A program made the position numbers and the translations under genes. DNA of 64,000 bases from Takakia lepidozioides (taxonomy: Eukaryota; Plantae; Bryophyta), in contig CM060733.1 in NCBI GenBank assembly GCA_030704615.1, positions 14,508,001 through 14,572,000 of the forward strand, given 5' to 3'. The first letter of the stretch is position 1, and each line of letters starts with the position of its first letter. Under the pieces are notes generated by a model. That model searched no databases and was not told where the DNA came from. It was given only the letters and a program-made list of their open reading frames with translations. This document shows, in pieces, positions 2,211 to 25,862 of the stretch.

Positions 2211-3654
2211 ATCTGCCCGGCCCATCAAAATCTGAACTGGTATATAGTTCACGATTTAAATCCTACACAAATATGATAGAAAGAAAGGAATTTATTGTGC
2301 CACTTGGATCCTAAGAGATAAAAAGTTTCAACCAAAAAGACGAGACTTGAGCTCATAACAACAAGGCGTAAGATACACGGAGGCCTTACCATTGTTTTAT
2401 TGATATGAAGTTTTATGGAATTATGTTATGACTAATAATAATGTATTTTAATTTTGAAGTGATTTTTTAATTATTTAAAGGAAAGGGACAGAAGCCCTGT
2501 TGATCAAATTAAATAAGAAGGAGGGGTGGAAAAGATAACCACCCGGGGGGGGGGGCTGCTGTGAGGCTTATTGAGGGGGAACTTCCCCGGAACCAAAGCG
2601 AACATGCTAAGTGAAAGGAGCAAGGAAACCCAAAGGGATGTCTTTGAGAAGGACGGGTCGAGAGAGTGGTGTGGGGGGCCTAGAGAGATGTGGTAGGGAT
2701 GGGGGGGGATTAGTAGCAGGATTCGAAGTGATTATGAAGTGACGTTCTATTTTTAAAATGAAATGTTGTGTGTGTAGATATGACGGACGTATAGTTATCA
2801 CGAAAGATAAAGTGTTGACAAAGTCGGGGATCCTGATTTGCATGGAGATATTATTGCATTTGTACAAGTATGATCTAATTGAGATTGATAATCGGTTGTG
2901 TGTTCCGAGAATATTAATTGAAATTTGTGGACAAAGAAAACACAAAGAAACATAGAATCGAAAACTTTGGTACCTGATGACCCAAGTAGTAATATCGCAA
3001 GGGAAGTGATTCTCAAAGTTGGACAGCTTTGTTTAAAGAGAAATTTTAAGAAGGCCTGTGTTAGCCCTCATCAAAAAGACTCAGACAAGTAAGAGGTACC
3101 CAAGATCTATGTTTAGGTGGTGTTTGCATGCAGGCGAAAGAAGGAGCAGAGATCCGCTCTGGCAGGAGTTCTACAGATTCTTCAGAGTGGTGGGACACGA
3201 AATGTGAGGAGGTCAGGCTGTCTTCATTTAGGACATGAAGAGTTTGTCTAGGAGGGCTTGTCACTGAAACTGGCGGCATGATGATGTTTTGTGGACAGGA
3301 TTGTTCCCAATTGCTTACATTGGTGACATTGTTGCTTTTTCTCTCAAAAGAGCAGAAAAAAAGAGCTTCTTACTTTTGCTGGTCTTTGGTTGTTCTTGCT
3401 TGCGAGAAGGCCATAAAAGCAGGTCACTCAAGGTTGTTCCCTGTTGTTTGAAAGATGCTTGGAGCTTTCCGGGTTTGTGCGAGGCTGTAGTCGAAGCTCC
3501 GGTTACTCAACCTCCACTTATTGTCTCTACAGAGAAGTCCCAGTTCACCAGACTTCAGACATAAACGCAAAAAGGACGACCTTTGGGTTGAGGGTTGGTC
3601 TAACCCTCCATGGGTGAAAGCTAAGCTAGCTGCCATAGTTCAAGGTCAAGCACA

Positions 3655-6177
3655 ATGTGTTATGTGAGGACACTATGTATGGCAGGACGAGTGAAAGAAG
3701 CCCTGCATGTTTTGAACCAGCAGGATATTTCAGCAGACACCAAAACTTACGTCTGTCTCTTGCGTGAGTGCATTCACATGCAAGACCTAGCAAAGGGAAA
3801 GCAGGTGCATGCCCACATTATCTACAGTGGATACAAGCCAAACATCTTTGTACTGAACACCCTTGCCAATATGTATGTGAAGTGCGGCAGCCTAGTGAAT
3901 GCACGCCTTGTGTTTGACAAAATGCCTGAACGAGATATGTGTACATGGAATATAATGATGGCAGGATATGCCAAGCATGGGTGTAGTAGAGAGGCTGTTG
4001 AGATGTATGAGCAAATGATACAGGAAGTGGTGACACCCAACAGGGTCACTTTCATTTGTGTTCTCAAGGCTTGTGCCAGCCTGGCAGCCCTGGAAAAGGG
4101 CATAAAGGTACATGCTGATGTTATCAAAGCTGAAATTGGGCCAGATGTGGTTCTGGAGACTGCCCTTGTTGACATGTATTCCAAATGCGGAAGCATGAGG
4201 GATGCACGTCAAATGTTTGACAATATGTCTGGACGAAGTGTGGTCTCATGGAACGCCATGATCGCAGGGTATGCTCAGAATGGGTGTGGTATGGAGGCTT
4301 TCGAGATCTATGAACAAATGGTAGTGGATGGGGTGATGCCTGACAGGGTCACGTTCGTTTCCGTCCTCAAGGCATGTGCGAGCCTGGAAGCCCTGGAAAA
4401 GGGCATAGAAGTGCATTCTGACATCATCAAAGCTGGAATTCCACAAGATGTTATTCTGGAAACGGCCCTTGTCAATATGTATGCCAAATGTGGGAACTTA
4501 AAGGATGCACGTCAATTGTTCAACAGTATGGCTGAAAGAAATGTGATCTCATGGAACGGGATGATCGCAGGATATGCTCAGCATGGTTGTGGTCGGGAGG
4601 CTTTCGAGATGTATGAGCAAATGATACTGGAAGGCGTGACACCTAACAAGGTCACCTTCATTTGCATTCTCAATGCATGTGCCAGCCTGTCGGCCCTGGA
4701 CAAGGGCACACAGGTCCATGGTCATGTGATTCAAACTGGAATTGCGCCAAATATTATTCTGGAGAATTCGCTTGTCGACATGTATGCCAAATGTGGGAGC
4801 ATAAAGGAAGCGCGTCGAGTCTTCGACAATATGGCTAAAAGAGATGTGGTTTCATGGAATGCAATGATAGCAGGATATTCTCAGCATGGGTGTGGTAAGG
4901 AGGCCCTCCAATTATTCGGAAAAATGCAACAGGACAATATAGAGCCGAATGTGGTCTCTTGGAGCGTGATGATTGGAGCATTTGCTCAATGTGGGCGGGC
5001 TATGGAGGCTTTCAAGATGTATGATCAAATGATACAAAAAGGGGTGGCTCCCAACAAGGTCACTTTCACATGTGTTCTCAATGCGTGTGCCAGTGTGGCA
5101 GCCTTGGAGAAGGGCAAACAGGTCCATGGCGACATCATTGAAGCTGGATTTGTACCGGATATCAATTTGGGGAGTACTCTTGTCGACATGTATGCCAAAT
5201 GTGGGAGCCTAAAGGATGCACGGCAAGTATTTGACGATATGACTGAACGAGATTTGGTCTCTTGGAGTGCAATGATCGCAGCATATGGTCAACATGGGTT
5301 TGGTAAGGAGGCCCTGAAACTATTTGAACAAATGCAACAGGAAGGCTTGAAGCCGGACAATATCACCTTTGTTTGTGTTCTCTCTGCCTGTAGCCATGTG
5401 GGCTTAGTGCATGAAGGCCGTCACTACTTTGGTTCCATGAGTCAAGATCATGACCTCACTCCTGCAGTGGAGCATTTTGGGTGCATGGTGGACCTGCTTG
5501 GCCGTGCTGGGCGATTGCATGAGGCTGAGGACTTCGTTAACCAAATGCCACTTCAACCAGATGCTGGGGTTTGGGGGGCCTTGCTGGGTGCCTGTAGAAT
5601 TCATGGTGATGTGCACATAGCAGAACAAGCAGCAAAATGCCTTCTCAAGTTGGATCCATTGGACGCCGCAACTTATGTGCTGCTTTCGAACATCTATGCT
5701 GCTGCTGGCAGGTGGGACGATTTAGTGCATGTTAGAAAATTGATGCAGGACAGAGGTGTGAGAAAGGAACCAGGGCGGAGCTGCATTGAGGTAGACAATC
5801 AAGTGCATACATTCCTTGTGGATGACAGATGCCATGGACAAATTGAAGAAATCCTTGCTGAGCTGAAGAGATTGTTTGGGCAGATGAAGGAGGCCGGGTA
5901 TGTGCCTGACACACGCTTTGCATTGCACGATGTGGAAGAGGAGGTAAAGGAATCTTCTCTTTGCCACCACAGTGAGAAGCTGGCCATTGCTTTTGGGCTG
6001 ATCAGTACACCCCCAAGGACACCTATCCGCATCGTCAAGAACCTTCGGGTTTGTGGTGACTGCCACACTGCCTCCAAGTTCATCTCAAAGATTGTCGACC
6101 GAGCCATTGTTCTCCGGGATACTAACCGCTTTCATCATTTCCAAGACGGGGTGTGTTCTTGTGGGGATTACTGGTGA
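3655..6177 (+). CDS. PLS-class pentatricopeptide repeat protein with E1/E2 and DYW cytidine deaminase domain (organellar C-to-U editing factor)
   Basis: 840 aa uninterrupted ORF with 18 P/L/S motifs, E1/E2, PG box (KEPGRSCIE), HSEKLA, CGDCH and terminal CSCGDYW. The true start or an upstream transit-peptide exon is uncertain. Confidence 0.96.
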   Translation: MCYVRTLCMAGRVKEALHVLNQQDISADTKTYVCLLRECIHMQDLAKGKQVHAHIIYSGYKPNIFVLNTLANMYVKCGSLVNARLVFDKMPERDMCTWNIMMAGYAKHGCSREAVEMYEQMIQEVVTPNRVTFICVLKACASLAALEKGIKVHADVIKAEIGPDVVLETALVDMYSKCGSMRDARQMFDNMSGRSVVSWNAMIAGYAQNGCGMEAFEIYEQMVVDGVMPDRVTFVSVLKACASLEALEKGIEVHSDIIKAGIPQDVILETALVNMYAKCGNLKDARQLFNSMAERNVISWNGMIAGYAQHGCGREAFEMYEQMILEGVTPNKVTFICILNACASLSALDKGTQVHGHVIQTGIAPNIILENSLVDMYAKCGSIKEARRVFDNMAKRDVVSWNAMIAGYSQHGCGKEALQLFGKMQQDNIEPNVVSWSVMIGAFAQCGRAMEAFKMYDQMIQKGVAPNKVTFTCVLNACASVAALEKGKQVHGDIIEAGFVPDINLGSTLVDMYAKCGSLKDARQVFDDMTERDLVSWSAMIAAYGQHGFGKEALKLFEQMQQEGLKPDNITFVCVLSACSHVGLVHEGRHYFGSMSQDHDLTPAVEHFGCMVDLLGRAGRLHEAEDFVNQMPLQPDAGVWGALLGACRIHGDVHIAEQAAKCLLKLDPLDAATYVLLSNIYAAAGRWDDLVHVRKLMQDRGVRKEPGRSCIEVDNQVHTFLVDDRCHGQIEEILAELKRLFGQMKEAGYVPDTRFALHDVEEEVKESSLCHHSEKLAIAFGLISTPPRTPIRIVKNLRVCGDCHTASKFISKIVDRAIVLRDTNRFHHFQDGVCSCGDYW

Positions 6178-9449: not shown

Positions 9450-12400
9450 ATGTACTCATAAGACGTTGTTTGCCGTAGCCTTGTGGCCATTGACCCCGCG
9501 CCCAGTTTGAGCGGGAACAAAAGGGACAGAACCTACCTCTGTCAGGGGCTGACGTTGGTAGTAAGACTTACCTTCATATATAGAATTACTCCGGGTTTTC
9601 CAGATATCCTCTAGAAATCCCTTCACACAAGCATCAATCTGCTGTGTGTGATTTGCCCAAAAACTAGGCCTCAGGAGGGCCTGGGCTTTTGGCTCAGCCT
9701 CGAGACTTTCAAAGTTGGTAAACAGGGGTACAGGCACAATTCCCTTGATAGATTTGAAGAGAGCGTCTCTTTGGTGAGAGAACCCCGGACAGTGTATCAG
9801 AAAATGAATACTGTCTTCGCCCACACAACGGGCAATTGCACTCTCCCTTTCCTCTCTGCTTCTGTTTGCTGTTCAAAGGTAGGCTTCCTGCCCTGAGTTT
9901 AAATTTCAGTCTAGTGCCGAGAGTGGGTAGACCCTTGAGGTCATCCAAGATGTCCTCCCCCATGTCACAGACTGGAAACAAGTTCAGGGAAGTTTTCTGC
10001 CTAACTTCATTTTCATCAGACAATCTCATGGCAACAGACATGGCTGAGGACGCTACAGCCTCTAAGTCAGATTTATCCAGCAGGGTCAAGACTTGCGGAT
10101 CCAGGTCCAGGACCTTGAGGATCTCTTCTACTCTCTTCTGCCAGGACCTAGCCTGTTTGACAGGGCGGTCCTGTTTCCAAGATATAGAGTCGATTAACTT
10201 AGGATATCTGGTGTTGGGCATATGTTGCAGCTGACCCCACCATCTGACCTTGAATTCATCTCGTCGGGAGCTTAAGGACGGAATGCCAAACTCACCCGAA
10301 CAGCCACATTGGCTGTTTTGGAGCATGCTGACATACACTCCTTAAGCACCCCCACTTGAATGGATTCTAGAGACTTAGCCTGGTTGGAGTTATCAACCCA
10401 AATTGCAGATCCGTACTCCAAGGCAGGTCTAATAACGCGACAAAGCATGGTTTTCTTAACCTCAGAGTTGACCCCTCTGCAGTGGAAAAATTTAGTGAGC
10501 CCCAGAGCTTTGCCCTTGCCAGTTTGAACAACTTTCCGGATATGTGCATCCCAATTACAATTGGAGGAGAACTCAACGCCCAGGTAAGTGTAGGAAGGGA
10601 GGACCGGGATCTCTTGGCTACCCCACTGCCACTTAAGATCACTTCCTCCCTCTCCTCTGTCGTTGAATGCTACCACTGCACATTTGCTGACATTAGCCTC
10701 TAACCCCCAAAGATCAAAGTATCTCTTCGCGCAATCAATCAACTCCTGGAGATTGGTTGGAGTCTCCCCTATGCCTGCGAAGTCATCCGCAAACATAAGG
10801 GCTGGTATGGTGGTATCACCCACCCTTAACCCAAATCCCTCACTTTCCACATCCTCGAGGAGTTGATTGATGAAAACATTGAGGAGCAGAGGGGAGAGAG
10901 TACATCCTTGAGCTACACCTTGGTCTATGTCAAAGAAGTTGGACTTCTGTCCGTTAACAGTGACACAGCTTTTGGTGTGAGCATACAAGTTGTGGACAAC
11001 TCTCCACATCTTTCCCTTGATCCCACAAGACCAGAGGCGGAACCATAGGCCATCTCTCCACACTGTGTCATAAGCCGTTTTGACATCCAGGAAAAAGACA
11101 TAAGTGGGTTTCCCTTCTTTTTTCCTTCCCTGGAAGAGTGAAGATATGATCCACACAGCCCCTGTTTCGCCGAAAGCCAGCTTGGCCTTCGTGGAAACAA
11201 CCTCTAGACTCCAGATCAACCTCGAGACGAGTACTTATAGCTCTGCAGAATGTCTTGCCAACAGCATTGAGGAGCGTGATGCCACGGTAGTTCCCCGGTT
11301 CTTCTCTGTCACCCTTCTTGTATAGATTGACAATGACCCCCTGTCGCCAGCGAAAGGGGATCATTTCAGTCTTCCAGATAAGGTTAAAGAGGAGAACTAG
11401 GGCCTCTATCATGGGATCGCCACCGTGCTTGATAAGCTCGTTGACAATACCATCAGGTCCACCGGCTTTATATCCATTTAAATGTTCAATTGCTTCCACA
11501 ATCTCAGAAGAACTAATGGGAGCGTTATAAGCCATTGAAATATACTCCAGTTCATCAGGGCTGTTTTGAATCATAGGAACAGTTTTTCCAACTGTGTCCC
11601 TCCATTCAGCAGAAGACCCCTCACTGTTAGACCTAGAAGTTCTGCCAAGGATACTGTAGTGAGTTTCAAAGGTTTTGACAATGTCAACCGATGAAGTCAC
11701 CACTGCACCTTTAGTAGTCTTCAGCGCTTGTACTTGCTGACCGTTTTTCGGCTTGTACAAACGTTGAAGGGCCAACCAGAATTTCTTGTCATTACCACCA
11801 TGGTGGTTTGAGTTTATTTCACTGTATAACTTGTCCCAGTATAATTTCTTCTGAGACCTAACAAGCTGATTGATATCTTTACGGAGCTGGTAGTACCTCG
11901 CCCACAATTCTCTGTTGGTTTTCAAATTGCAGCACTCTTTATAGAGGGCTCGTCTCTCAGCTATCTTGAGTTTAATCTCATTGGTCCACCAATTAACTGC
12001 TCTACCGCAGACAATTAGTTTCCTCCCAATGATCTTGTCAGCCACGGAGGAAACGAAACTCTCCCAAGAGTCCACTGCTCTTTCGACTTCATTTCTTGCG
12101 TTAACAGAGCGTGACTGAAGTTCTTGGAGCGATTGGACAAAATGAGGGAGAGCCTCTTGCAAGGCCTGGACGTACTCAGCCTTGACCTCCTCATTGTGGA
12201 ATTTTTCTATGCGCCACTTCCGAATCGAACGTTTCACAGATCTCTTGGTGGTGGGAAAACACCTTTTGATCTCAGTCCAAACCAGGAAGTGGTCAGAGGT
12301 ACCAATATCAGTTCTGTCGATCAACACATTGGCACACTGGGGGAACAAAATTTTGTCCATTATGATATAGTCCACAATGGAACGTTCCCCAGTTTGGGAT

Positions 12401-14304
12401 TTCTTACGAGTCCACTGCACTTGGTCACCTCTTGTCCTGTTATTCAAGGTCAAAAGCTGAAGCTCTTCTAGACAGTTAATTAACCGTCTGCCATTAGAAT
12501 TCAGCTAGTCCTCACCAAAAGGTCCAATGATATCGTCCTGATGGATCCCTTTGCCCACCCGGGCATTGAAGTCCCCCAATAGTACCACCTGACCTTTGGC
12601 AAGGAACGAAGCACAGTCCAGCTTTACATCTTCGAAGGCCTTGTCTGCGTCAGCACTAAGGGTCCCCTCTGTGGGCATGTAAACACAACCAACAAAGAGG
12701 TCCTTTGTACTCATGCCGCCCTTCAAATTCAGTTTTATCCAGATACTATGCTCGTACCTCAAACCCTTGTTGATAATTTCACAATTGTCAAACAAGAAAT
12801 CACGGACAAAGAATCCGACCCCTTTTTGACCGCGTTTGGCAGAGGCTGCCTTGAGAGTACACATCTTACCTGCCCATTTATAACCAATGACATCTCCAAC
12901 CAGTTTATCCGACGTTTCCCATGTTTCTTGCCCAGCACAGATATGAATATCATTAGTCCGAAGAACTTGTCCCACTTCAAGTTGTTTCCTTTGGTTGGTC
13001 AACCCTGAGAAGTTGAAAGTGGCCAGCCGCAAGCCAGCCCTTTGCGTGAATTGTTTGTCGTCTAGGTAGCTTGTGATTGCTCCTGTACGGCCAACCGTTC
13101 TGCAAAGGGGGGACAGTTACCCCATGTGTAGATTTTGCTCGTCTTGTGTAAACTTTGAGAATTGGTAAACCATTCAGGGTACCAAATCTTTCAGTTACAC
13201 GACGCACAGGCTCCGCACACATAGGGGCAGATTGTCCATCAGACTGCTTGGGGACAATTACCCCGTGTATAGATTTTGCTCGTCTTGTGTAGACTTTGAG
13301 GATTGGTAAACCATTTAGAGTACCAAATCCTTCAGTTACACGACGTTCAGGCTCTGCACACTTAGGGACAGATTGTCCATCTGACGGCTTGGGGACAATT
13401 ACCCCGTGTATAGAATTTGTTCGTCTTGTGTAAACCTTGAGGATTGGTAAACCATTCAGAGTACCAAATCCGTCAGATTCAGGACGTTCAGGTTCCGTAC
13501 ACTTAGGTGCATCTTGTCCTTCTGGCTGTTTGGATTCAACCTCATCCAGAGCATCAAACCGATTAGAAACTCTCAAGTTGAAGTTGTTGCCCTTGGTTGT
13601 CTTCCTAGAGCGCCCCATTGAATCACCAATGTCTAAGACCGCTCTCCAGCCAGTCAAGGGACGAACTTCTTTGAGATTGAATTGATGCGGGACTCTATTA
13701 GAAGCACTTTTGGTCATTGCAACCTTCAACGTACCCCTGTTATCAAGTCTCGAGATGGTACCATTAGCCATGAAATCCAAGCCTAAGCTAGAGCATGTAG
13801 TTTTAAAGGACACATCGTCCATCCTGGGATTCACCCCAAAAACTACACATGAAGCCCTAGATTTGGCATAAGTAACCAATTCCCAGGGATCACCCCGAGG
13901 AGTGTTGATGTTGATAGGAGCTAAATTTTTTATTGTTTTCGCAGGCCATAAGTTTAAGCACAGGAACCAACCCGAGCCCAAGTGCCGAGTATGCTAGACA
14001 GAGCATACAACTGCCCAATTTGGGCGGAGGGGCTGCCCCCAAGCGGTAGGAGTCCGCTTGTTACCATTCAGAGATCACACTCCAGGGAGTTGCAGGGAAT
14101 GGCCCGTGTAGGCATATTCTAAAGAGGGAAAGGCCCCAAGCTTTCCAACTAAATCCAATGCACTACCTTACCTGAAGCAAAGCGCTTCAGGTCGAAACAA
14201 ACAAGGACACGAGGTCACAAGGCCGGCATTTAGTCACAGAGACATTAATGTACTCCCGTTTCAAGTCCACCCAATGTCAATAGGCTTCCTAGAGGACAGG
14301 GAGA
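9450..14304 (-). mobile_element. near full-length APE-type LINE (RTEX/RTE-like; clade uncertain), frameshifted
   Basis: ORF1 12977-13981. APE 12505-13032 and 11068-12453 (ATFNFSG, QETW, GDFNA, VDYI, SDH). RT 10272-12453 (QAGFR, AYDTV, QGCTLSP, FADD). C-terminal CPLC..H..C at 9709-10338 and 9456-9824. Flanked by tggacgaaagaga at 9437 and 14305. Confidence 0.9.
13110..13520 (-). repeat. ~3.3 x 120 bp coding tandem repeat (40 aa) in LINE ORF1
   Basis: PKCAEPERRVTEGFGTLNGLPILKVYTRRAKSIHGVIVPKxSDGQS unit repeated three times in ORF 12977-13981. Confidence 0.9.
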
Positions 14305-14807: not shown

Positions 14808-15985
14808 GAATGTATTCAAAAGACTTTGTTTGCTGTAGCCTTGCGTCCATAGACCCTGCACCCTGTTTGGACGGAAATTTCATAGGGAAAATAGGCACTA
14901 CCTTTGTGAGGGGCTCACTCGAGTAGTCTGACTTACCTTGGTATAAACAATTAGTTTGGGCTTTCCAGATATCCTCTAGAAAGCCTTTCACACACGCATC
15001 AATCTGCTGTGTGTCAGCAGCCCAAAAGTTAGACCCCACAGGGCCAGGCCTTTAGGCTCAGCCTTGAGATTTTCAAAGTTGGTGAACAGAGGTGCAGGAA
15101 CCATATTCATGATGTTCTCGAAGAGGGCCACTCTCTGGTGAGAATACCCCGAACAATGTATCAGAAAATGAAAATTGTCTTCAGGTTCCCCGCACATCAG
15201 GCATCCTTTTCCTCTCTGCATCTGTTGATTGTTCGAAGGTAGGCTTCCCAACGGCCTGGGCTTTTGGCTCAGCCTCAAGATTTTCAAAGTCGGTAAACAG
15301 AGGTTCAAGAACAAATCCCTTGAGGGATGTGAAAAGGGTGTCTCTCTGGTGAGAGTACCTAGGACAATGAATCAGAAAGTGGACATTGTCTTCAGGTTGC
15401 ACACACAATGGGCATTTGCAATCCCCCTTTCCTCTCTGCATCTGTTTGCTGTTCAAAGGTAGGCTTCCTGCCCTGAGTTTAAAATTCAGAGTGGGTAAAC
15501 CCCTGAGGTCATCCATGAGGGCCTCACCCATGTCACAGACTGGAAACAAGTTCAGGGAAGTTTTCTGCCTAACTTCATGTTCATCAGACAATTTCCTGGC
15601 AACAGACATGGCTTTGGACACTACATCCTGTAAGTCAGATTTATCCAGCAGGGTCAAGACTTGGGGACTTCGATTCAGATCCTTGAAAGTCTCTTCTACC
15701 CTCTTCCTCCAGGACTTGCCTGTTTTTCAGGGCGATCCTGCTTCCAAGTTATAGAGTCAATTAACTTAGGATATCTGATATTAGTCATACGTTGCAGCGG
15801 ATCCCACCATCTGACCTTGAATTCATTTCGTCTGGGAGGTTAAGGGAGGAATGTCGAGAATGTACTCATAAGACGTTGTTTGCCGTAGCCATGTGGCCAT
15901 TGACCCCGCACTCAGTTTGAGCGGAACACAAGGGACAGAAACTACCTTTGTCAGAGGCTGACGCCGGTAGTATGAGTTACCATTG
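14808..15985 (-). mobile_element. two further 5'-truncated copies of the LINE 3' end (14808-15835 with an internal duplication of the Zn-finger segment; 15856-15985)
   Basis: ORFs 14749-15039, 14988-15314, 15181-15657 and 15823-16014 parallel ORFs 9456-10338; same 3' terminus gagaatgta(c/t)tca. Confidence 0.88.
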
Positions 15986-15990
15986 AGGAG

Positions 15991-17889
15991 AGAGAGAGAA
16001 GATATACATGTCATGTCAAGACATGGACAAGACCACTAAAGTCATTGTCATTGAAAGACAAAGCAACCCTTTACAGGGCATCATCTAACAACCCCTTTTA
16101 CCAACTCATTTGAACATCTTATAACTTTTCAGGGTATCTGAAAAAACAGGGTGGGAGGGCGGGATTCCTGGTCATTCATATCCTGAAAGCCCTATAAGTT
16201 GACATAAAGCATTCATTTTTTGTTGTTGACATGGGTCAAGCCTTACATAATCTAGTTCTTGAGCCATTCATCTTCCTAAAACAACATCCTGTGTAGGCGT
16301 GAAACTGATCTGTCAGTGCCAAGACACATGCAAGATTCATAAAGTAGAAGCGGGGCTAAGTTTTTATCAAGTATATGTAAGCCTGGATAATCATTCCAGG
16401 ACTTCAAGATCAAAACTCTGCCATAGTATAAGGTAGGAAGCGCACAACATCTACCAGCAAGCAGTTCTTGAAAACCAAAATACTGATGGGGTCAGGTCTG
16501 AAGGTGCTTCAGTGCCAAGTCATAAGCCAGATTTCTAACAAAACAAAACATAGGGCTGAGTACCCTTAAGTAGATATGGGCCTGAAGTGGTATTCCAGGG
16601 CCTCATAACAAGCTCTGCTAGTTAAAGAAATGAACTCAGAAACCATTGTCCCCTATCATGCAATGAAATAGTGGTGATATAAGAGCCTTGAAGAATGTTT
16701 GTTATCACAAGGTCTATCTTCTGATCCATCAGAGCCAGGCCATGGTGTTTCATTTCAGAGCTTAGTTTCCATGCTGCCAAGCTATAGTCGCAGCCATGTA
16801 CCTTTGTTAAAAACATCCAGAGCTTTCAACAGAGATTTTGTTTTCTATGAAGTCCCTTGTGTGTCTTAACTCCAAAATGTATAAAAGTGGTTATCAAGAA
16901 CCAAAAACAGGGATAAGGAGTAAGAAGGTGATCCTCATTAGAGCAGACTTGAAGCCGATTTGAGGCAGCAAGATGGCAGATTTGAAACAACAGTTGGTAT
17001 CAGCAACTTCAGGCGGTAGCAGCAATCCCTTATGCATGAATCAGACTCTGCAAGCTTCAATAATTCAAGACAAGTGAAGACCCTCACCTGTGCCCGTCCC
17101 AAAAACCACCACATAGAGATGTGTGTTAGTGAGGATGCATCAGGTGAGTGGCAGGTTTTCACAGTTGCTATCCATGTCAGTGTTGAATTCCAAAGCATGT
17201 ACAAATCGTAATCCAAGCAAGGGTACACTCAAAAGAAACCTTGAGCGTTTGCGGTATGCCCTGCGCCATGGCATCCAGTAGATGTCTCCAGCAGAACGCA
17301 ATCAAAGTAGATAGAGATCAGCTCATACAGAAAGAGAGCAACATGTAATCTGTGGCTAAGTAGGGGTGGAGTACTTCCCAACGAGGAGTAAGAGCGCCGC
17401 TGCGAATTTAACAGAATCATAAATTTCTGAGCAGAGCGATCACTGCAATGTCGACTGCCAGAGAAGAATCTGTCTATCTGCCATTGCGCATCCCAAAAGC
17501 CAGCCATCACGAGTACCATGTAGCCGCAAGGGAGCAGGTTTACACGGCGCATCATCAAGGATCATAGAAGCACGAGTTCAGTGCTGTGAAATATGTCGGC
17601 CCGTTTAGGGCATATCTTCCCGATTTTTCATCCAGGGTGGATGAAAAATCACATTTTTAAGAGATGCACTTTGTTAATGGATGATATCCCATAAAAAGGT
17701 ATCTTAGGGTTACGGTATAGGCTTAGGTTTAGTAACTGCCATCATTAATGATGGTACAGATTACTACCTCTTGGATTTTTAGAATAGGTCACCAGTATTC
17801 ATGTATTTCATCCAGTTTAGATGAAAGAAGCAAATAGTAAATATCAGGGCCAAATGAAATCCAAAAAGTTATAGAGGGAGAGGGAGAGA
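15991..17889. repeat. direct repeat copy A (downstream pseudo-LTR)
   Basis: Matches 22132-24031 with offset 6141/6142; only one 1-nt indel seen by eye (ccaagc ~16780 vs ccaaagc ~22920). Confidence 0.95.
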
Positions 17890-17931
17890 GGGAGAGAGAG
17901 GGACCCACCAGCCAATCCCCTGGCATGGCAT

Positions 17932-18003
17932 AACCTTACGGAATGAGTGTGGTATGCACTCACCCCGTAAGGGAGTGCATACCAGACCTCTTCTCATAAG
18001 GTT
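17932..18003 (-). other. long stem-loop in the element's 3' UTR
   Basis: tggtatgcactc / gagtgcatacca 12-bp stem (17950-17984) enclosed by aacctta / taaggtt. Confidence 0.7.
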
Positions 18004-18164
18004 TCCCTCTTCCATGTAGTTCTATCATCGGATTATATTATCCAAGGGAGTAGAATCCTACATCCTCATTTCCTCGGCTCATGAATGAAACATTAGTATA
18101 AAAATGTGACATAGCAAAACTAGTATAGTATTACTAGCAAAGAACATAGAGTTCAATGGTATAC

Positions 18165-20387
18165 TTAGCTCTGGATAGGTTTTTGGAAAATACCTTTCAG
18201 TTTCTCAATAAGCTCATGTACAGGGAAGAACAAGCCAGGGAATGAGCCTTGTTCAAGGAACCTTGTCAAGATACGAGCAAGTTTCCTGGTCTTAAAACCA
18301 TTCCTCCCAAGAGTGTTAATCAGAATGCTGCATTCCTTCCAAGCCAAAACAGCATTGCTGGAAATGTATAGAATAGGCACAGCTTGTGAAATCACAATGT
18401 TGTAGGATTGATTCACAGGCCTATTGGATAAGAACTGGATATATTGAGTGTAAGAGAAAGGAAGTAGTCTTCTCTTGTCATATTTCTGGAAATAGAACTC
18501 ACCTGTGTCACTGTTTGAGACTGTAATCTGGATATTCATGAAACAAGCTTCCAACCCCACGTATTGGGAATCGGTTTTGGTACGTAGTAGCTCAGGTTTG
18601 ATCTCCACTACATTGAGTGGGTAGATCCACCAAGGGTTGTTGTTGCTTCTGTCTGCCTTTGGGTCCAGGAACAGCATTGCATCACCCACATTCAGCCAGC
18701 ATATATCATCAATGTATCTGAAGGCAGATTTAAACAAAGGCATGAGCTGGAATTGTCCCAAAGCTGCAAGCCTTAAGATGAATTTGATCTCGTAAGAAAG
18801 GAAGTACATGTTGGACCATAATGGTGAGCATGAAAAACCCATAGGTATTCCAGAAATCTGCTGCCACACACGGTCCCCTAAGGCAACAAAACAGTGTGAC
18901 ATAAGCCATTTGTGGAGCATAAGTAACTTGGCTTCAGAAAGCTCAATCCAAGTACCTGATTTCGGGGAGGACGTGCCCCACCTACTTTTCCGGAAAGTAC
19001 CGTTTTTGGCTGGAATCCATAGAGTATGACGTGCCCGGGGGTGAGACATATGGTGTTGCTGGAATGCAATCTTCACCACGTATTCAATGGCGTCCCCTAG
19101 GTTATCCTGACCTGTCAAAGGTATGTTCTCATAGCATTGTGTAATGTCAGCCACAAAGATGTTATGGACTTTTGCAGGCAGGTTTAGTGTAAAGTCAGTG
19201 ATGGAATCAATAATCCAATACATAGCAGTAGATACTTTGAAAAATTGCTCATAAGTATCCAGCCTTGTTTTGGTCCATTCTTTTACCAATGGTAGAAGAT
19301 CCATGGTAGCTCTTGTAAGGAGGCTAGCTAGTTCACTGAAAACACATTTGTGGGCATTGGTAATCCATCTGTATTTTTTCTTATGTAGCTTGTAGATTCC
19401 CATAATGTAAGGTAGTCTACAGGAGGGAACAGGTATCTCCGGAATCAAACTCTGTATTTCCACGGAAATGTTTCCTAGAACAAGGTCAGGTGGCAGCCAT
19501 ACCTCATCTTGCTTGCATGGTGTAAAGTCTTTACCCATCAATCTGTGGAATGCTTGGATTCTTACGTGCTTCACACACATAAAACATACATTGTTGTTAG
19601 CCTTGTCAAGACCAGAGAAATACAGGTGATTGAGAAGCCATGAAAGTTCGTCTTTTGCCTCTTTTACAGTAAGAGGATTGCGCTCATGGTGAGTGAAGTC
19701 ATACCTTCTTCTGCCGGCTTTTTGTTTCAGTCTATCCCAGCATGTGTTTTTTACCCATTGGTTGCAGGTTGCAGCCCAAGATTCACATGGGTCTATATGC
19801 AAAATTTCACAGGTTCTGTGGAAAGCCAAAGACACTTGTTCAACAACGTCTTTTAGTAAAGTACGTTTGAGAGGGATGTGATTCATACCTAGGCTGAATA
19901 ATTCTTTCAGCTTTGCGTGTTTAATAATGTTCAGGTCCATGGTACGTACGTGTTGCGTAGGTGTAGAACCAGACAGATGGAATTCTGATTTTGTATCCAC
20001 ATCCCGAAAATCATGAAACCTCTTGGCACTGTCACATAGACAATCTGGTGAGTGAATCAAGTCTTGCATAAAGCAAAAATCACGGAAAACAACAGCAGGC
20101 TGATAGTATTCAGAACTGCTTTGTTTATGATATGTCCATCCAAAAACTATCTCATCGATGAGAATAGCTAAGTCATTTTGCCCAAATTCCAGAAAGGCTT
20201 CTTTTATCAGGTTCTTAGGGTGTATCCACTCCATACCACGGTTTGGGTATAACATATGAATGAATCCCAAAGGAGCAGGTTTTGCTGCCTGTTTTATGAA
20301 TTTCCTGCCATGGGCATGAGTTTCAATTTGTTTGCAACCATCCTCAAAGACATATAACGCATCTGCACATACAGAGTAGAGGAACAT
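18165..20387 (-). CDS. Penelope-like reverse transcriptase (Naiad/Chlamys-like N-terminal CxC..H region), no GIY-YIG
   Basis: 740 aa. CLC...HVRTMDLNIIKHAKLKELFSLG, DKANN, ADITQCYENIP, QISGIPMGFSCSP, FRYIDD, YDKR, SNRP thumb; protein ends shortly after NGF. Confidence 0.88.
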   Translation of the reverse strand: MFLYSVCADALYVFEDGCKQIETHAHGRKFIKQAAKPAPLGFIHMLYPNRGMEWIHPKNLIKEAFLEFGQNDLAILIDEIVFGWTYHKQSSSEYYQPAVVFRDFCFMQDLIHSPDCLCDSAKRFHDFRDVDTKSEFHLSGSTPTQHVRTMDLNIIKHAKLKELFSLGMNHIPLKRTLLKDVVEQVSLAFHRTCEILHIDPCESWAATCNQWVKNTCWDRLKQKAGRRRYDFTHHERNPLTVKEAKDELSWLLNHLYFSGLDKANNNVCFMCVKHVRIQAFHRLMGKDFTPCKQDEVWLPPDLVLGNISVEIQSLIPEIPVPSCRLPYIMGIYKLHKKKYRWITNAHKCVFSELASLLTRATMDLLPLVKEWTKTRLDTYEQFFKVSTAMYWIIDSITDFTLNLPAKVHNIFVADITQCYENIPLTGQDNLGDAIEYVVKIAFQQHHMSHPRARHTLWIPAKNGTFRKSRWGTSSPKSGTWIELSEAKLLMLHKWLMSHCFVALGDRVWQQISGIPMGFSCSPLWSNMYFLSYEIKFILRLAALGQFQLMPLFKSAFRYIDDICWLNVGDAMLFLDPKADRSNNNPWWIYPLNVVEIKPELLRTKTDSQYVGLEACFMNIQITVSNSDTGEFYFQKYDKRRLLPFSYTQYIQFLSNRPVNQSYNIVISQAVPILYISSNAVLAWKECSILINTLGRNGFKTRKLARILTRFLEQGSFPGLFFPVHELIEKLKGIFQKPIQS

Positions 20388-20404
20388 ACCAAAAAATGAG
20401 ATTT

Positions 20405-22120
20405 TTACAGATCATTCCAAGATCCAAAGTCTCGTTTGTGTATTGGGGAGAACTCGTCAGTGATACGACGAGTCTTGTATGACTCCTGGCTGGCGATGTT
20501 GATGGTGGTACTGGAATTAGCACCCGAACCCCCAGTTGAGGACCGATTCGTTGCTCTTGAATTCTCAGAGGTGTTGGTAGAGTAATGTCCCCTGCCAGAG
20601 CGTCCTCCTCTTTGGTAGAGACCTCTTCCACGACCAGGGGTACCTCTTCCCCGGGCAGTGCTGCTCTTGCCTTGTTGAGGAGGCATCTGCCCCTCCATAC
20701 GCTGCCGTTTGTAGCTATTGAATTGTGGCCTGGGAAGGCTGTCTGAAAAAGACCCAGGTTTCACGAGTTTCTCAATGTATCTGGCCCCCTTGGATTCTCC
20801 TAACTTCGCAAGCAGCTTGGCTTGTGGGTCATTTGAGAATTCACAGGCTGCTTCCATTATGAACCCTCGGGTCATCTGGAAAGTAATTTGTGCCAGTACA
20901 GCAGATCTGGCAGCCCGCATGATCCATACCAGAAAATTGTAATACTTGGTTTGCACCGAAGGATAGGTATCATCAGGGAAGAACACAATCAGATTGTTCA
21001 GCATATACCAAACCATATGGTCAAACCAAGCAACACTCCCAATGCAAGAAGAAGGTGCCCCTCCTTGTCCACAGTTGCATCTTATGTAGGGACGATGCCA
21101 ATTGAAGAGTTGACTCTTATGGTTCTTGGATCTGGCTGATCCAGTCGGCAAATCATTTTTGGTCCTCAAGGTAAGGTTCTCACCTTTGTCACAGAGCTTG
21201 TAGTAGAAGGTCCTTAGTGGCCACGCCACGGCAATAGGTTCCTTTTTTATTCTCTGAAGACCCTCCTTAGCATCCTGTGCACATCTACTGCGTTCAGCAG
21301 GAGTTATGTTGCCCCATTTGACCCACATTTCAATGGAAATGGGTGCCAATAGGTTGATATTAGCATGTGGATGCCACATCATATGATCGTTATTGGCAAC
21401 CTCTAATTCAACTGCACGGGGAGGCAACCAAGGGACAAATTGCAGATTTCCAGGAGTGGCACCTGCTGCTCTTTCTTGTTCCACTTGTGAGAGTTCTACT
21501 TGTTCACAGAATTCTCTCACTGCCTCTTTTTCTTCATCCGGTAAAATCATGTGCCCAAGGATTGGGTGATTACTTACAGAAGGGATGAAGTCTTTTTCAG
21601 AGGTGTTTGCAGATTTCTGCGTGGAGACAGTCTGGTCATCTTCCGGGTTCGCCATTCTAAGAGCAGCCTCAATGGCTGATCCCTTCTTTTCCCATTGTAT
21701 CAGCTCCTCGGCATCATCTTCCAGTACCTCAATCATTTTAGTATTGAACTCCTGGAGCTTCTCCAGGTACCTGCCATTCTTATTTGCCATGATGCCAAGT
21801 GCAACCCAATTTTCCAAAGCCAAAGTCTCAAGTAGTAATACGGGATTTTCATCACCTGAATTTTCCAAGGCCTCAGTGTCCATCTTTTGTAATGTAGCAT
21901 GGAAGTCACTTGGTGTGACTTGTGCGAGGGTTGCTTGTACAGCAGGAATTGGAGGAGGTAGAGGGGACTGATACCCCAGAGCTACGAGGTCCTCATTCCA
22001 TCTAGGGTCTCCTTTGGTGACCTTCTGTCAAAGTCCCCCCGAAAAAACTTGTCAGTGCATCATAATGAGAAGGTGAAAAGGAGATGGGTAGATGATGTGT
22101 ACAAATACCACTAAGTACAT
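20405..22120 (-). CDS. ORF1 of the PLE-like element, unknown function (~543 aa if spliced; predicted intron 22025-22108)
   Basis: The 492 aa ORF frame stays open upstream to TGACAG at 22025-22030 (acceptor). ATG TAC TTA GTG|gtattt at 22120-22103 gives an in-frame donor. Helical N-terminus, CNC-x8-C-x8-H motif, RGG-rich C-terminus. Confidence 0.75.
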
Positions 22121-22131
22121 TGGTCAAATAA

Positions 22132-24031
22132 AGAGAGAGAAGATATACATGTCATGTCAAGACATGGACAAGACCACTAAAGTCATTGTCATTGAAAGAC
22201 AAAGCAACCCTTTACAGGGCATCATCTAACAACCCCTTTTACCAACTCATTTGAACATCTTATAACTTTTCAGGGTATCTGAAAAAACAGGGTGGGAGGG
22301 CGGGATTCCTGGTCATTCATATCCTGAAAGCCCTATAAGTTGACATAAAGCATTCATTTTTTGTTGTTGACATGGGTCAAGCCTTACATAATCTAGTTCT
22401 TGAGCCATTCATCTTCCTAAAACAACATCCTGTGTAGGCGTGAAACTGATCTGTCAGTGCCAAGACACATGCAAGATTCATAAAGTAGAAGCGGGGCTAA
22501 GTTTTTATCAAGTATATGTAAGCCTGGATAATCATTCCAGGACTTCAAGATCAAAACTCTGCCATAGTATAAGGTAGGAAGCGCACAACATCTACCAGCA
22601 AGCAGTTCTTGAAAACCAAAATACTGATGGGGTCAGGTCTGAAGGTGCTTCAGTGCCAAGTCATAAGCCAGATTTCTAACAAAACAAAACATAGGGCTGA
22701 GTACCCTTAAGTAGATATGGGCCTGAAGTGGTATTCCAGGGCCTCATAACAAGCTCTGCTAGTTAAAGAAATGAACTCAGAAACCATTGTCCCCTATCAT
22801 GCAATGAAATAGTGGTGATATAAGAGCCTTGAAGAATGTTTGTTATCACAAGGTCTATCTTCTGATCCATCAGAGCCAGGCCATGGTGTTTCATTTCAGA
22901 GCTTAGTTTCCATGCTGCCAAAGCTATAGTCGCAGCCATGTACCTTTGTTAAAAACATCCAGAGCTTTCAACAGAGATTTTGTTTTCTATGAAGTCCCTT
23001 GTGTGTCTTAACTCCAAAATGTATAAAAGTGGTTATCAAGAACCAAAAACAGGGATAAGGAGTAAGAAGGTGATCCTCATTAGAGCAGACTTGAAGCCGA
23101 TTTGAGGCAGCAAGATGGCAGATTTGAAACAACAGTTGGTATCAGCAACTTCAGGCGGTAGCAGCAATCCCTTATGCATGAATCAGACTCTGCAAGCTTC
23201 AATAATTCAAGACAAGTGAAGACCCTCACCTGTGCCCGTCCCAAAAACCACCACATAGAGATGTGTGTTAGTGAGGATGCATCAGGTGAGTGGCAGGTTT
23301 TCACAGTTGCTATCCATGTCAGTGTTGAATTCCAAAGCATGTACAAATCGTAATCCAAGCAAGGGTACACTCAAAAGAAACCTTGAGCGTTTGCGGTATG
23401 CCCTGCGCCATGGCATCCAGTAGATGTCTCCAGCAGAACGCAATCAAAGTAGATAGAGATCAGCTCATACAGAAAGAGAGCAACATGTAATCTGTGGCTA
23501 AGTAGGGGTGGAGTACTTCCCAACGAGGAGTAAGAGCGCCGCTGCGAATTTAACAGAATCATAAATTTCTGAGCAGAGCGATCACTGCAATGTCGACTGC
23601 CAGAGAAGAATCTGTCTATCTGCCATTGCGCATCCCAAAAGCCAGCCATCACGAGTACCATGTAGCCGCAAGGGAGCAGGTTTACACGGCGCATCATCAA
23701 GGATCATAGAAGCACGAGTTCAGTGCTGTGAAATATGTCGGCCCGTTTAGGGCATATCTTCCCGATTTTTCATCCAGGGTGGATGAAAAATCACATTTTT
23801 AAGAGATGCACTTTGTTAATGGATGATATCCCATAAAAAGGTATCTTAGGGTTACGGTATAGGCTTAGGTTTAGTAACTGCCATCATTAATGATGGTACA
23901 GATTACTACCTCTTGGATTTTTAGAATAGGTCACCAGTATTCATGTATTTCATCCAGTTTAGATGAAAGAAGCAAATAGTAAATATCAGGGCCAAATGAA
24001 ATCCAAAAAGTTATAGAGGGAGAGGGAGAGA
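22132..24031. repeat. direct repeat copy A' (upstream pseudo-LTR)
   Basis: Duplicate ORFs 23080-23370 and 23371-23700 are identical to 16938-17228 and 17229-17558. Confidence 0.95.
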
Positions 24032-25862
24032 TGGAGAGAGAGGGAGGGATTATCGTTTACAAAGTTGGATCGGGGGTGCATCTTCCCATATCCTTGCTCC
24101 AAAAGAGAAATGAAATGAAATGAAATGAAATGGTGCTCCAAAAGAGAGAAAGAGAGAGGGGTGCCAACCAGAGTGCTTCTTCATTGTCCAAGTGAATAGA
24201 AATGTTACTGTGTTGGATGCAGGTGCATGAACCGCAATATTTGCAAATGGTTGAAGTGATTATGGAGGTAGCGAGAGCGGAATCAGCAGTGCCCAGATTC
24301 GGAATGATTTCAGACTTGAAATCACTCGAAGAATTCACACAAGATCCGCAGGCAGAGGGGCTTCAATCCAATGACTCCCGCATTGGTTCCTGTTGCCTTG
24401 TATGTTCCTCTATATATTCTCCTCTGCTAAACTTCCTTTCTCAGCTCCTTTCTCTAAGTTGGGTGCACAGTTGATAGCCGTAATGTATTTCATCCGTTTG
24501 GTGTCACGAGGTTTTTTCTATCCTTCGCAGTCAATTTTCCCCCATGTCATCCATTGAAGCCACATCTCACTGTGACAGATGCTCCTCGATCACTTATGTG
24601 ATGAAAGTCAAGGGATGCAAAGCCTACACATTGGCATAAGCTTTCTACTTACAGATACCTGGGCAGGTTGTCTGTACATTATTTCACACAATGAGGGGTT
24701 TCTTTCCCCGGCATCACAGCTTAGGTCCATGTGCCCTAACAAGGGGCAAATGGTTTTCCATTCAACTGCATATCTGCTGACATTGAGAAACAACCTTGAC
24801 AGCTTGAGTGTATGGCAATGCACACAGGTGGAGAGCATTACTGATACTGTAGGTGGTGGTCTTTTGGTAAACTACAATTGCGCTGGCCGGTTTATTTTGT
24901 GTGATGTAAAGCGCACTGTCCCCTTCCATGTGGCCCAGGTGGTCTGGGTTACAGATTATCCACCTGACATGCCAGGCAGCAGTAGTGGGGCCTCCAGAGA
25001 CAGGCTAGAACGGGAGGTGTGGCAAGCCCTTAATGCTATCGAGCTTGAATCTGCTGGCAAGCAGTCAGAGGTTCCAAGCCTTAGATCATTATCAGAGGAG
25101 TGGTTGCCGGCAGCAGTCAGGCAATGACTGCAGGTGGGCAACATCCCTCTCTCTCTCTCTCTCTCTCTCTCACCTCTTCCTTCGGATTTGTTATTTTTCA
25201 TTCTCTCACTTCTTTTGCTGTGTTTGTTATGTTTGTTGTCCCATAAGCTCATTGGGCTTCCTGAGGACGCTATAGAGTTCTCTCTTTCTGACAATCTTCC
25301 TTTTCCACGAATGTGTGACTCTCTGTCCAACCACACCCATGCATGAGGCCCCTGTTTTCAGATAGAATGCAACATAAGCAGTTATACACCATGTTCTCCA
25401 GTAAAATGTAAAATCCATCTTTACATTAACACCAAATCAACTATGTAGCTGAAATGGCACTGTCAAGCTGATTTTTGTGCTTTGGTAGGTCGAATTTCAA
25501 AGCCTTCTTCGATTGGGAACGTCTTAACCCTCATTGCCTTCACAAGGGTCATTTCTCACGGGGAGCGTCCTCAAGGGGACTAAAATACAAAATCAAACCT
25601 GCTGGATTTTCTTTTTGATACTTCTTAACAGGCTGCAAGTCTCTGTTCGTTCTTTGTTATTGTTCTACTGTGTCCCATGGATCCTCAGGCCTCCTGTAGA
25701 AAATGACCAGAAATTTATTATAACTTGCAGTAGGGGAAGTGGATCATTATCAGACGAATTTACCATGCTAGAGAGACAATCAATCAAAGTCTCTGTCTAG
25801 AGACTACATTTAACACCATCTCAGTTGGGATACCTCTCCACAATGAAACCAAATTAAAAGAA

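Follow-up and report, generated by a model that had tools for sequence, protein, structure and literature searches.

How Penelope-like elements (PLEs) that lack an endonuclease (EN) insert inside chromosomes is an open question, one that Craig et al. 2021 (PMC8557442) raised explicitly for the PLE-X families. The locus described here, which makes the question testable, lies on the minus strand of a 64,000-nt stretch of DNA from Takakia lepidozioides (contig CM060733.1, positions 14,508,001 to 14,572,000; the window, to whose numbering all positions below refer) and occupies positions 15991–24045. In our judgement it is probably one insertion of an EN-less Penelope-like retrotransposon, to be placed within the Naiad/Chlamys group on its EN-minus PLE-X branch. 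An earlier reading of the same DNA, made from the sequence without database searches and referred to here as the original prediction, had proposed an intact, EN-less PLE of a possibly undescribed lineage.

Two direct repeats enclose, in the element sense, a leader, open reading frame (ORF) 1, a spacer, ORF2 and a 3' untranslated region (UTR). By blastn self-comparison and MAFFT alignment, the repeats extend from 22132 to 24045 (upstream copy in the element sense) and from 15991 to 17903 (downstream copy), and they are 1,914 bp long and 99.9% identical. The original prediction had set the right end at 24031, which the repeat alignment moves to 24045, and had counted about one indel between the repeats; the 1-nt indel (16778/22920) is there, and it is accompanied by one substitution (17890/24032). 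On the plus strand, AGAGAGAGAAG opens each repeat (15991–16001 and 22132–22142) and a 31-nt GA/GGGA run closes it (17873–17903 and 24015–24045). Read in the element sense, each repeat starts with a 31-nt TCCC/TC tract (24045 to 24015 upstream, 17903 to 17873 downstream) and ends with a short (TC)n (22142 to 22132, and 16001 to 15991, where it adjoins the host flank). All four repeat borders are thus GA/GGGA runs, as had been stated. The accompanying claim, that the element is anchored in GA microsatellites, is borne out insofar as the element ends in CT/GA repeats. However, two of the four borders are internal and element-encoded, with the same positions occupied in relatives, and the host flanks contribute just ~6 purine-rich bases per side beyond the repeats, so that a pre-existing (GA)n target at the insertion site is not shown. 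There was no target-site duplication in the flanks and no second copy of the element within the window, and no CCCTAAA or telomeric repeat arrays were found at the element, in agreement with the interstitial site originally proposed. Neither ORF1 nor ORF2 has an internal stop, also as proposed (the start codon of ORF1, discussed below, is uncertain), and the two frames differ and are 17 nt apart.

ORF2 (18165–20387, minus strand; 740 aa) encodes a Naiad/Chlamys-type Penelope-like reverse transcriptase (RT) with no endonuclease domain, as judged from its motifs, a structural model and profile alignment. Pfam returned a sub-threshold RVT_1 match alone (E 0.15), and the sequence contains FRYIDDI, CxC (C116, C118), HVRTMDLNII and LDKA. 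Its landmarks are CxC at residues 116–118, HVRTMD at 146–151, DKA at 261–263, motif A at D414, motif B at G513, YIDD at 558–561 and a helical thumb at about 658–735. Fifty-four homologues, all of them unnamed metagenome proteins of ~700–750 aa with 40–50% identity to ORF2, have in common invariant CxC, HVRTMD and DKA motifs and an RT core with RYIDD. Neither ORF1 nor ORF2 was itself present in the protein collection. Over 42 homologues CxC, DKA (D261, K262, A263) and YIDD are invariant, and C116 and C118 are invariant or nearly so in sets of 42 and 28 sequences. The AlphaFold (AF2) model of ORF2 has a pLDDT of 80.7 and a pTM of 0.77. When this model was used in a Foldseek search of the PDB, the best 15 matches were all telomerase RTs (TERTs), and VIA gave Z scores of 12.8, 12.5 and 11.8 to TERTs, the highest to Tribolium TERT over residues 89–740, a span within which the modelled N-terminal region of ORF2 superposes on the RNA-binding domain of TERT. 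The VIA matches were to RTs and RNA polymerases only, and residues 1–86 were scarcely covered by them. The spacing between motifs A and B is 99 aa, compared with 86 in an EN-containing (EN+) relative and 62–72 in canonical-like PLE RTs, and the model places helices at 430–448 and 485–497 within this insertion. An IFD-like lengthening of the A–B interval has been described for Naiad and Chlamys by Craig et al. 2021 (PMC8557442), and the 99-aa gap of ORF2 is a lengthening of this type.

Chlamys and Naiad elements are defined by an N-terminal GIY-YIG endonuclease, and we compared ORF2 with one such protein, P0250, in which GIY-YIG was detected at residues 64–138 (Pfam 29 bits, above the cut-off). 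The ORF2-family profile aligned with P0250 by hhalign at 99.9% probability and E 1e-35, collinearly over ORF2 residues 39–717; the alignment begins beyond the nuclease domain and linker of P0250, and the CxC motifs of the two proteins fall opposite each other. With a match that starts past the nuclease domain, ORF2 is the same protein as that of the N-terminal-GIY-YIG relatives, minus the endonuclease. Consistent with this, GIY-YIG, HNH and AP-endonuclease domains gave no Pfam match in ORF1 or ORF2, no GIY-YIG sequence signal was seen in ten family N-termini at Pfam E<=10, and in the homologue alignment none of the invariant positions within ORF2 residues 1–115 is an R, H, E or N of catalytic type.

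These RT features bear on the possibility that a Coprina- or Athena-type telomere-attaching element landed at, or was carried to, an interstitial site. The present element shares with Athena and Coprina the absence of an endonuclease and a short RNA repeat that is proposed as the annealing site for a complementary DNA 3' end acting as primer; with Athena it also shares an upstream ORF1 with a coiled coil. Yet in Athena and Coprina that repeat is the complement of telomeric repeats, it stands next to a hammerhead, and the copies lie at chromosome ends, whereas here there are no telomeric repeats or their complement and no hammerhead, and a (UC)n tract lies beside a different fold at an interstitial site. 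Moreover, CxC, DKA and the long A–B insertion are Naiad/Chlamys markers, the RT is collinear with that of N-terminal-EN+ relatives, and the ends are CT repeats. We therefore consider a Coprina or Athena origin very unlikely.

The placement of ORF2 was examined further in a maximum-likelihood RT tree, rooted on canonical-like RTs, in which P0250 and the loci L020–L022 served as EN+ rows. L020 (142–2958), L021 (498–3422), L022 (428–3460) and P0250 are Naiad-like and have an N-terminal GIY-YIG with Cys/His zinc-finger-like motifs; the three loci came from a metagenome scan that yielded 9 loci, three of them useful EN+ references, and both L021 and L022 have borders of (TA)n, which Naiads are reported to prefer as a target. 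ORF2 falls in a radiation of 33 rows (SH-aLRT 94), whose sister group is formed by the four N-terminal-EN+ sequences (99); no scanned member of the radiation has a GIY-YIG match. Within this radiation there are a clade containing the window sequence (SH-aLRT 100), a marine group and Chara braunii sequences, the last not resolved as sister to the window clade. With a threshold of E<=0.001, a profile search collected 5,190 proteins, most of which are metagenome sequences without a name, and a further protein search with a diverse alignment reached scarcely wider than the first. This number, together with the nuclease-free state of those listed close relatives that were scanned, suggests that the EN-less branch is much larger than the few families so far described.

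PLE-X, as defined by Craig, Yushenova, Rodriguez and Arkhipova 2021 (PMC8557442), consists of EN-minus families of the Chlamys group in Chara braunii and Selaginella, which have a CxC RT, no GIY-YIG and an N-terminal extension with a CxCX1-8C motif; BLAST hits in mosses and a genome-wide distribution in Chara were reported in the same paper. A full-text search of the later literature on PLE-X found only one paper, which reuses the sequences as references. We observed that the Chara braunii gene models GBG84735, GBG77882, GBG83558 and GBG87259 each combine an ORF1-like part with the same type of RT, and among the database proteins with both parts, four (P0178, P0110, P0087 and P0177) are Chara braunii models. 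The N-terminal parts of the Chara models align to the ORF1 profile over >230 residues, including RPY.KC.C-X(2-9)-C..W.DH. By these alignments, ORF1 is the accessory protein that seems, in the Chara gene models, to be fused to the RT as the "N-terminal extension".

Because both proteins match the Chara models and the layout is that published for PLE-X (PMC8557442), we assign the element to the PLE-X type rather than to a new system. The original prediction was correct in finding no GIY-YIG at either end and in calling the RT Naiad/Chlamys-type, for which CxC, DKA, the long A–B spacing and telomerase RT as best fold match all speak; its proposals of a novel ORF1 and of an undescribed lineage are not upheld, the former in view of the homology to the N-terminal part of the Chara RT models over >230 residues, CxC-X(1-8)-C included. 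Features in common with PLE-X are the CxC and DK(A) RT, the absence of GIY-YIG, the CxC-X(1-8)-C accessory part, pseudo-long terminal repeats (pseudo-LTRs) and a green-lineage host, and with the Chara families also an interstitial insertion. On the other hand, the accessory part is here a separate ORF1, in another frame and 17 nt upstream of ORF2, and not joined to it by an intron; there is no canonical hammerhead; and the element ends in CT/GA repeats, whereas PLE-X of Selaginella is found in 28S rDNA. The missing hammerhead, the two separate ORFs and the CT-repeat ends are the three points that set the element apart from the PLE-X description. Chlamys and Naiad elements likewise share with this one the CxC linker, DKA, the IFD-like insertion, pseudo-LTRs and the lack of a canonical hammerhead, as well as an RT collinear with the metagenome EN+ sequences (P0250, L020–L022), and their reported bias for microsatellite insertion sites has a parallel in the CT/GA ends; they differ in the N-terminal GIY-YIG, which is absent here, and in the separate ORF1, which is present here.

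It could still be argued that this is a truly undescribed EN-minus lineage, independent of PLE-X, in which the likeness of ORF1 to the Chara extension reflects deep ancestry. Such a view would draw on the absence of the canonical hammerhead that PLE-X is reported to have, on the organization of ORF1 and ORF2 as separate cistrons, each conserved to its own stop, and on the separate position of the window clade (SH-aLRT 100), which is not nested in the Chara group. We think it unlikely, since the homology of ORF1 and ORF2 to the Chara models covers most of each protein, since the published defining features of PLE-X (CxC RT, no EN, CxCX1-8C extension) are all found here, and since moss hits had already been noted by Craig et al. 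(PMC8557442).

In ORF1 (20405–21883, minus strand; 492 aa), a helical hairpin or coiled coil at the N-terminus is followed by a conserved central domain, and the tail is disordered and rich in RG. The central domain contains the motifs NINLLAPI and RPY.RC.C-X8-C.G..WFDH..W...NL..FF, with the Cys motif C269-x-C271-X8-C280. ORF1 had no match in Pfam or in a PDB profile search, its AF2 model is poor (pLDDT 48.8), VIA matched the N-terminal helical hairpin alone, to generic coiled coils, and an Atlas search scored below 0.9. Seventeen homologues at ~34% identity were found, one of them from the liverwort Calypogeia fissa, and an ORF1 lies directly upstream of the RT in L002, L005, L006 and L014–L017. 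Conservation of the homologues runs all the way to the stop codon of ORF1 itself, so that the ORF1/ORF2 layout can be accounted for without an intron. With its coiled coil, Cys/His motif and RG-rich tail, ORF1 would be a nucleic-acid-binding or chaperone protein. In a marine sister group with ~33% RT identity (L009, L010, the Tara Oceans scaffold L011, and L012), a homologue of the ORF1 core is encoded downstream of the RT, in an ORF of 518–566 aa that begins 4–14 nt past the RT stop and has only the G.M...DH..NL..FFP core in common with ORF1. The pairing of ORF1 with the RT is therefore old, although the order of the two genes is not fixed.

The intactness that the original prediction ascribed to ORF1 is not certain. 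A leader of 248 nt (21884–22131, minus strand) separates the upstream repeat from the ORF1 ATG, and in its last 48 codons (22027 to 21884) the ORF1 frame is open but has no ATG, GTG or TTG. This open stretch encodes the N-terminal block of the homologues, ..W.EDL..GY..PLPPP.P..QAT.., in relatives the Met stands a few codons ahead of the block, and near that place the window copy has AAG. It is this conserved block upstream of the ATG, with no start codon of its own, that makes the status of ORF1 uncertain; possibly, the start was lost in this copy, initiation is non-AUG, or a leader is spliced on.

The 1.9-kb repeats are not true LTRs but pseudo-LTRs such as Penelope elements usually have, with a partial and a full copy joined head to tail. 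L002 has the same kind of flanking direct repeats, and the layout recurs in L014, so that the pseudo-LTRs of the original prediction are supported by independent loci. In L019 the end of the RT is followed by the RNA module described below, (TC)n, ~2.4 kb of non-coding sequence and then the ORF1 of the next unit; with one repeat between two internal regions, this is a head-to-tail tandem. The contig ends of L014 and L009 overlap, as expected of tandem or repeat-flanked units, those of L009 (1–6604) by 119 nt, which gives a unit of 6,485 bp that is tandem or circularly assembled. In the window, L002 and L006 the last part of a pseudo-LTR is a short (CT)n, and in the window and L014 its first part is a long (TC)n. 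Two direct repeats of 1.9 kb with 99.9% identity are also what one would see with the true LTRs of an LTR- or DIRS-like element, or with a local segmental duplication or an assembly artefact, the last two having been named as alternatives in the original prediction. We hold this whole set of explanations to be extremely improbable: Pfam found no integrase, RNase H, protease or tyrosine recombinase in the element, there are no TG..CA ends and no target-site duplication, the single repeat of L019 marks a tandem rather than paired LTRs, telomerase RT is the closest match to the RT fold, and the same repeat layout recurs in unrelated metagenome contigs.

Each pseudo-LTR contains a 109-aa ORF with a TTG start (17229–17558 and 23371–23700, minus strand, in the element sense); in the L002 repeat there is a called gene of 108 aa on the opposite strand, without nucleotide similarity to the window ORF, and the 109-aa ORF is probably not coding. 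By contig depth in the runs of the source organism, which is a crude measure, sub-regions of the pseudo-LTR (16459–17400, and its twin in 22600–23340) stood at 20–180x the coding region, e.g. 1,220 versus 6.6; another element, far more abundant and perhaps non-autonomous, probably has this high-depth part too.

The PLE-X families have been reported to carry canonical hammerhead ribozymes (PMC8557442). None was detected by Rfam at E<=1 in the 15000–25000 interval or in seven related loci, and the only Rfam match on the element at that threshold was a chance snoRNA-like one, occurring once per repeat. In a hand search of both strands, a CUGANGA core with a downstream GAAA occurred only inside the ORFs. 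Ahead of the RT, the marine relative L009 has a string resembling a hammerhead (440–545; also L010, 567–672), with the order helix I, CUGAUGA, GAAA, GGAUCC, UA and the complementary strand of helix I. We make no claim for it as a hammerhead, because two extra hairpins replace helix II and Rfam gave no match at E<=1.

At the nucleotide level, similarity to the relatives is limited to the RT coding region, except for ~95 nt that close the 3' UTR (17904–18164, minus strand; 261 nt from the ORF2 stop to the downstream pseudo-LTR). This segment, 17991 to 17895 on the minus strand, is a conserved structured RNA domain according to folding statistics, comparison with ten related loci in which the same architecture is present, and compensatory changes. 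In order, it comprises a purine run AGAGG (AGRGG in relatives), an outer helix, an inner hairpin, a G-rich box and (UCCC/UC)n. The strands of the outer helix in the window are CUGGUAUG and CAUGCCAG, the inner hairpin has 16 bp, and the G-rich box, CCAGGGG..GGUGGG (CCAGGGG .. GGUGG.GGG in its family form), abuts (UCCC/UC)n, at which the pseudo-LTR begins. The minimum free energy (MFE) of the window module is -48.4 kcal/mol (z -4.23), and none of 200 shuffled sequences folded as well; z was -4.1 for L006 and -3.3 for L001. RNAalifold recovered the outer helix, with compensatory double changes in 4 of its 8 pairs, as when CUGGUAUG/CAUACCAG is compared with UUGGUGG/CCACCAA, and the inner hairpin stays paired although at least three unrelated sequences form it. 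By chance, the stem motif would be expected 0.04 times per window. On first reading we had taken the module for an H-type pseudoknot, in which the hairpin loop pairs downstream. The nested fold is preferred, being the MFE structure in the window, L017, L001 and L016; the two folds use the same bases and are mutually exclusive, and the pseudoknot is kept as an alternative.

The combination of box and simple repeat reaches relatives as distant as 33% RT identity, and the repeat differs by family: the box is followed by (TTC)n in L001, while CAGGGTGGG is followed by (TGTT)8 in L009 and by (TGCGA)6 in L012, in each case 240–400 nt past the last ORF. Craig et al. 2021 (PMC8557442) do not, in their main text, mention such a stem-loop/G-box/microsatellite module. 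As a separate observation, L013, whose RT comes from another EN-less sub-clade, has a (CA)56 array (3458–3569) ~220 nt past the RT stop, with no G-box; (CA)n has been reported for many Chlamys elements.

The stem-loop and G-box upstream of the long tract are most likely the RNA site that is held by the N-terminal region of the RT, a reading suggested by the modelled superposition of this region on the RNA-binding domain of telomerase RT. In stringent-type LINEs, such as eel UnaL2 and CR1/L2-like elements, a 3' stem-loop is followed by a short tandem repeat that aligns template and primer; these non-LTR elements encode an AP-type endonuclease, and their 3' end is the repeat itself. Here, by contrast, the repeat is not terminal in the DNA copy, and ~1.9 kb of non-coding DNA lies beyond it.

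How, then, might such an element enter a chromosome? We would put at about even odds a nuclease-free route through (UC)n/GA annealing. In this scheme, (UC)n tracts in the element RNA would anneal to a DNA 3' end within a GA-rich stretch, and the annealed GA-rich end would prime reverse transcription, for which no nuclease would be needed. The far end of the cDNA would be a GA-rich copy of the long internal (UCCC/UC)n and could join the target by the same microhomology, and joining at the long tract would fix the 5' end of the partial copy there. Annealing and microhomology of this kind would explain the CT/GA runs both at the two outer ends and at the two inner junctions. Athena and Coprina are thought to prime on telomeric overhangs, and the proposed route is the same in principle. 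As for the RNA 3' end, if the likeness of the module to that of stringent-type LINEs is taken as a guide, the RNA would really end at the long tract, and a read-through unit would begin with the "3' pseudo-LTR". An equally good fit is given by the standard model for Penelope, with a 5'-truncated upstream copy followed by a full copy.

Several observations weigh against our interpretation, either of the element or of its route. Neither the first 86 residues of ORF2 nor the central domain of ORF1 gave a confident fold match, so that an unrecognised nuclease is possible. A hammerhead is missing here although the PLE-X families are said to carry canonical ones, and the assignment to PLE-X was made through Chara gene models that fit the published description, not through named consensus sequences. 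The insertion route is drawn from junction sequences at one locus and two contigs, and two CT tracts are both candidates for the RNA 3' end. With these points allowed for, the locus offers a very young copy with both frames uninterrupted (though the ORF1 start is uncertain), evidence that in streptophyte and marine relatives alike the accessory protein has been conserved as a partner of the RT, and a conserved fold and G-box placed exactly at the simple-repeat tract that forms the element junctions. The module supplies concrete substrates for a primer-extension assay and a sequence signature by which more such elements could be found.

A broader proposal, which we put forward as doubtful, is that the 3' module is the core of a nuclease-free insertion mechanism common to a large radiation of telomerase-related RTs in which no nuclease domain was detected. 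The TRBD-like N-terminal region of the RT would hold the fold, the adjacent repeat, which by family is (UC)n, (UUC)n, (UGUU)n or (UGCGA)n, would serve as an alignment or template tract like that of telomerase RNA, and DNA ends with a matching simple repeat, wherever they lie in the genome, would be extended by the RT or used by it as primers. If this were true, such elements would be a functional intermediate between telomere-attaching retroelements and telomerase.

The presence of only two differences in 1,914 bp argues for a recent insertion, provided that both repeats were copied from the same template, which is not certain for pseudo-LTRs. The family is multi-copy, as contigs from DNA runs of the source organism contained many pieces at >=99%, 95–99% and 90–95% identity. 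In a plant metagenome from another study, the pieces were mostly 90–96% identical. One run that we guessed to be RNA had just small pieces of 90–99% identity, which is not evidence of expression.

Elsewhere in the window, an intronless pentatricopeptide repeat (PPR) gene at 3655–6177 (plus strand) encodes 840 aa with an E motif and a DYW deaminase domain, of the organellar RNA-editing factor type, which marks the host as a land plant. At 10272–12453 (minus strand) there are overlapping ORFs of 315 and 461 aa, the first of which matches RVT_1 strongly (E 2e-23); they are a fragment of a LINE-like RT and have no relation to the element. Finally, at 13109–13533, ~2.5 kb from the element, a 141-bp unit is present in three tandem copies (87% matches).

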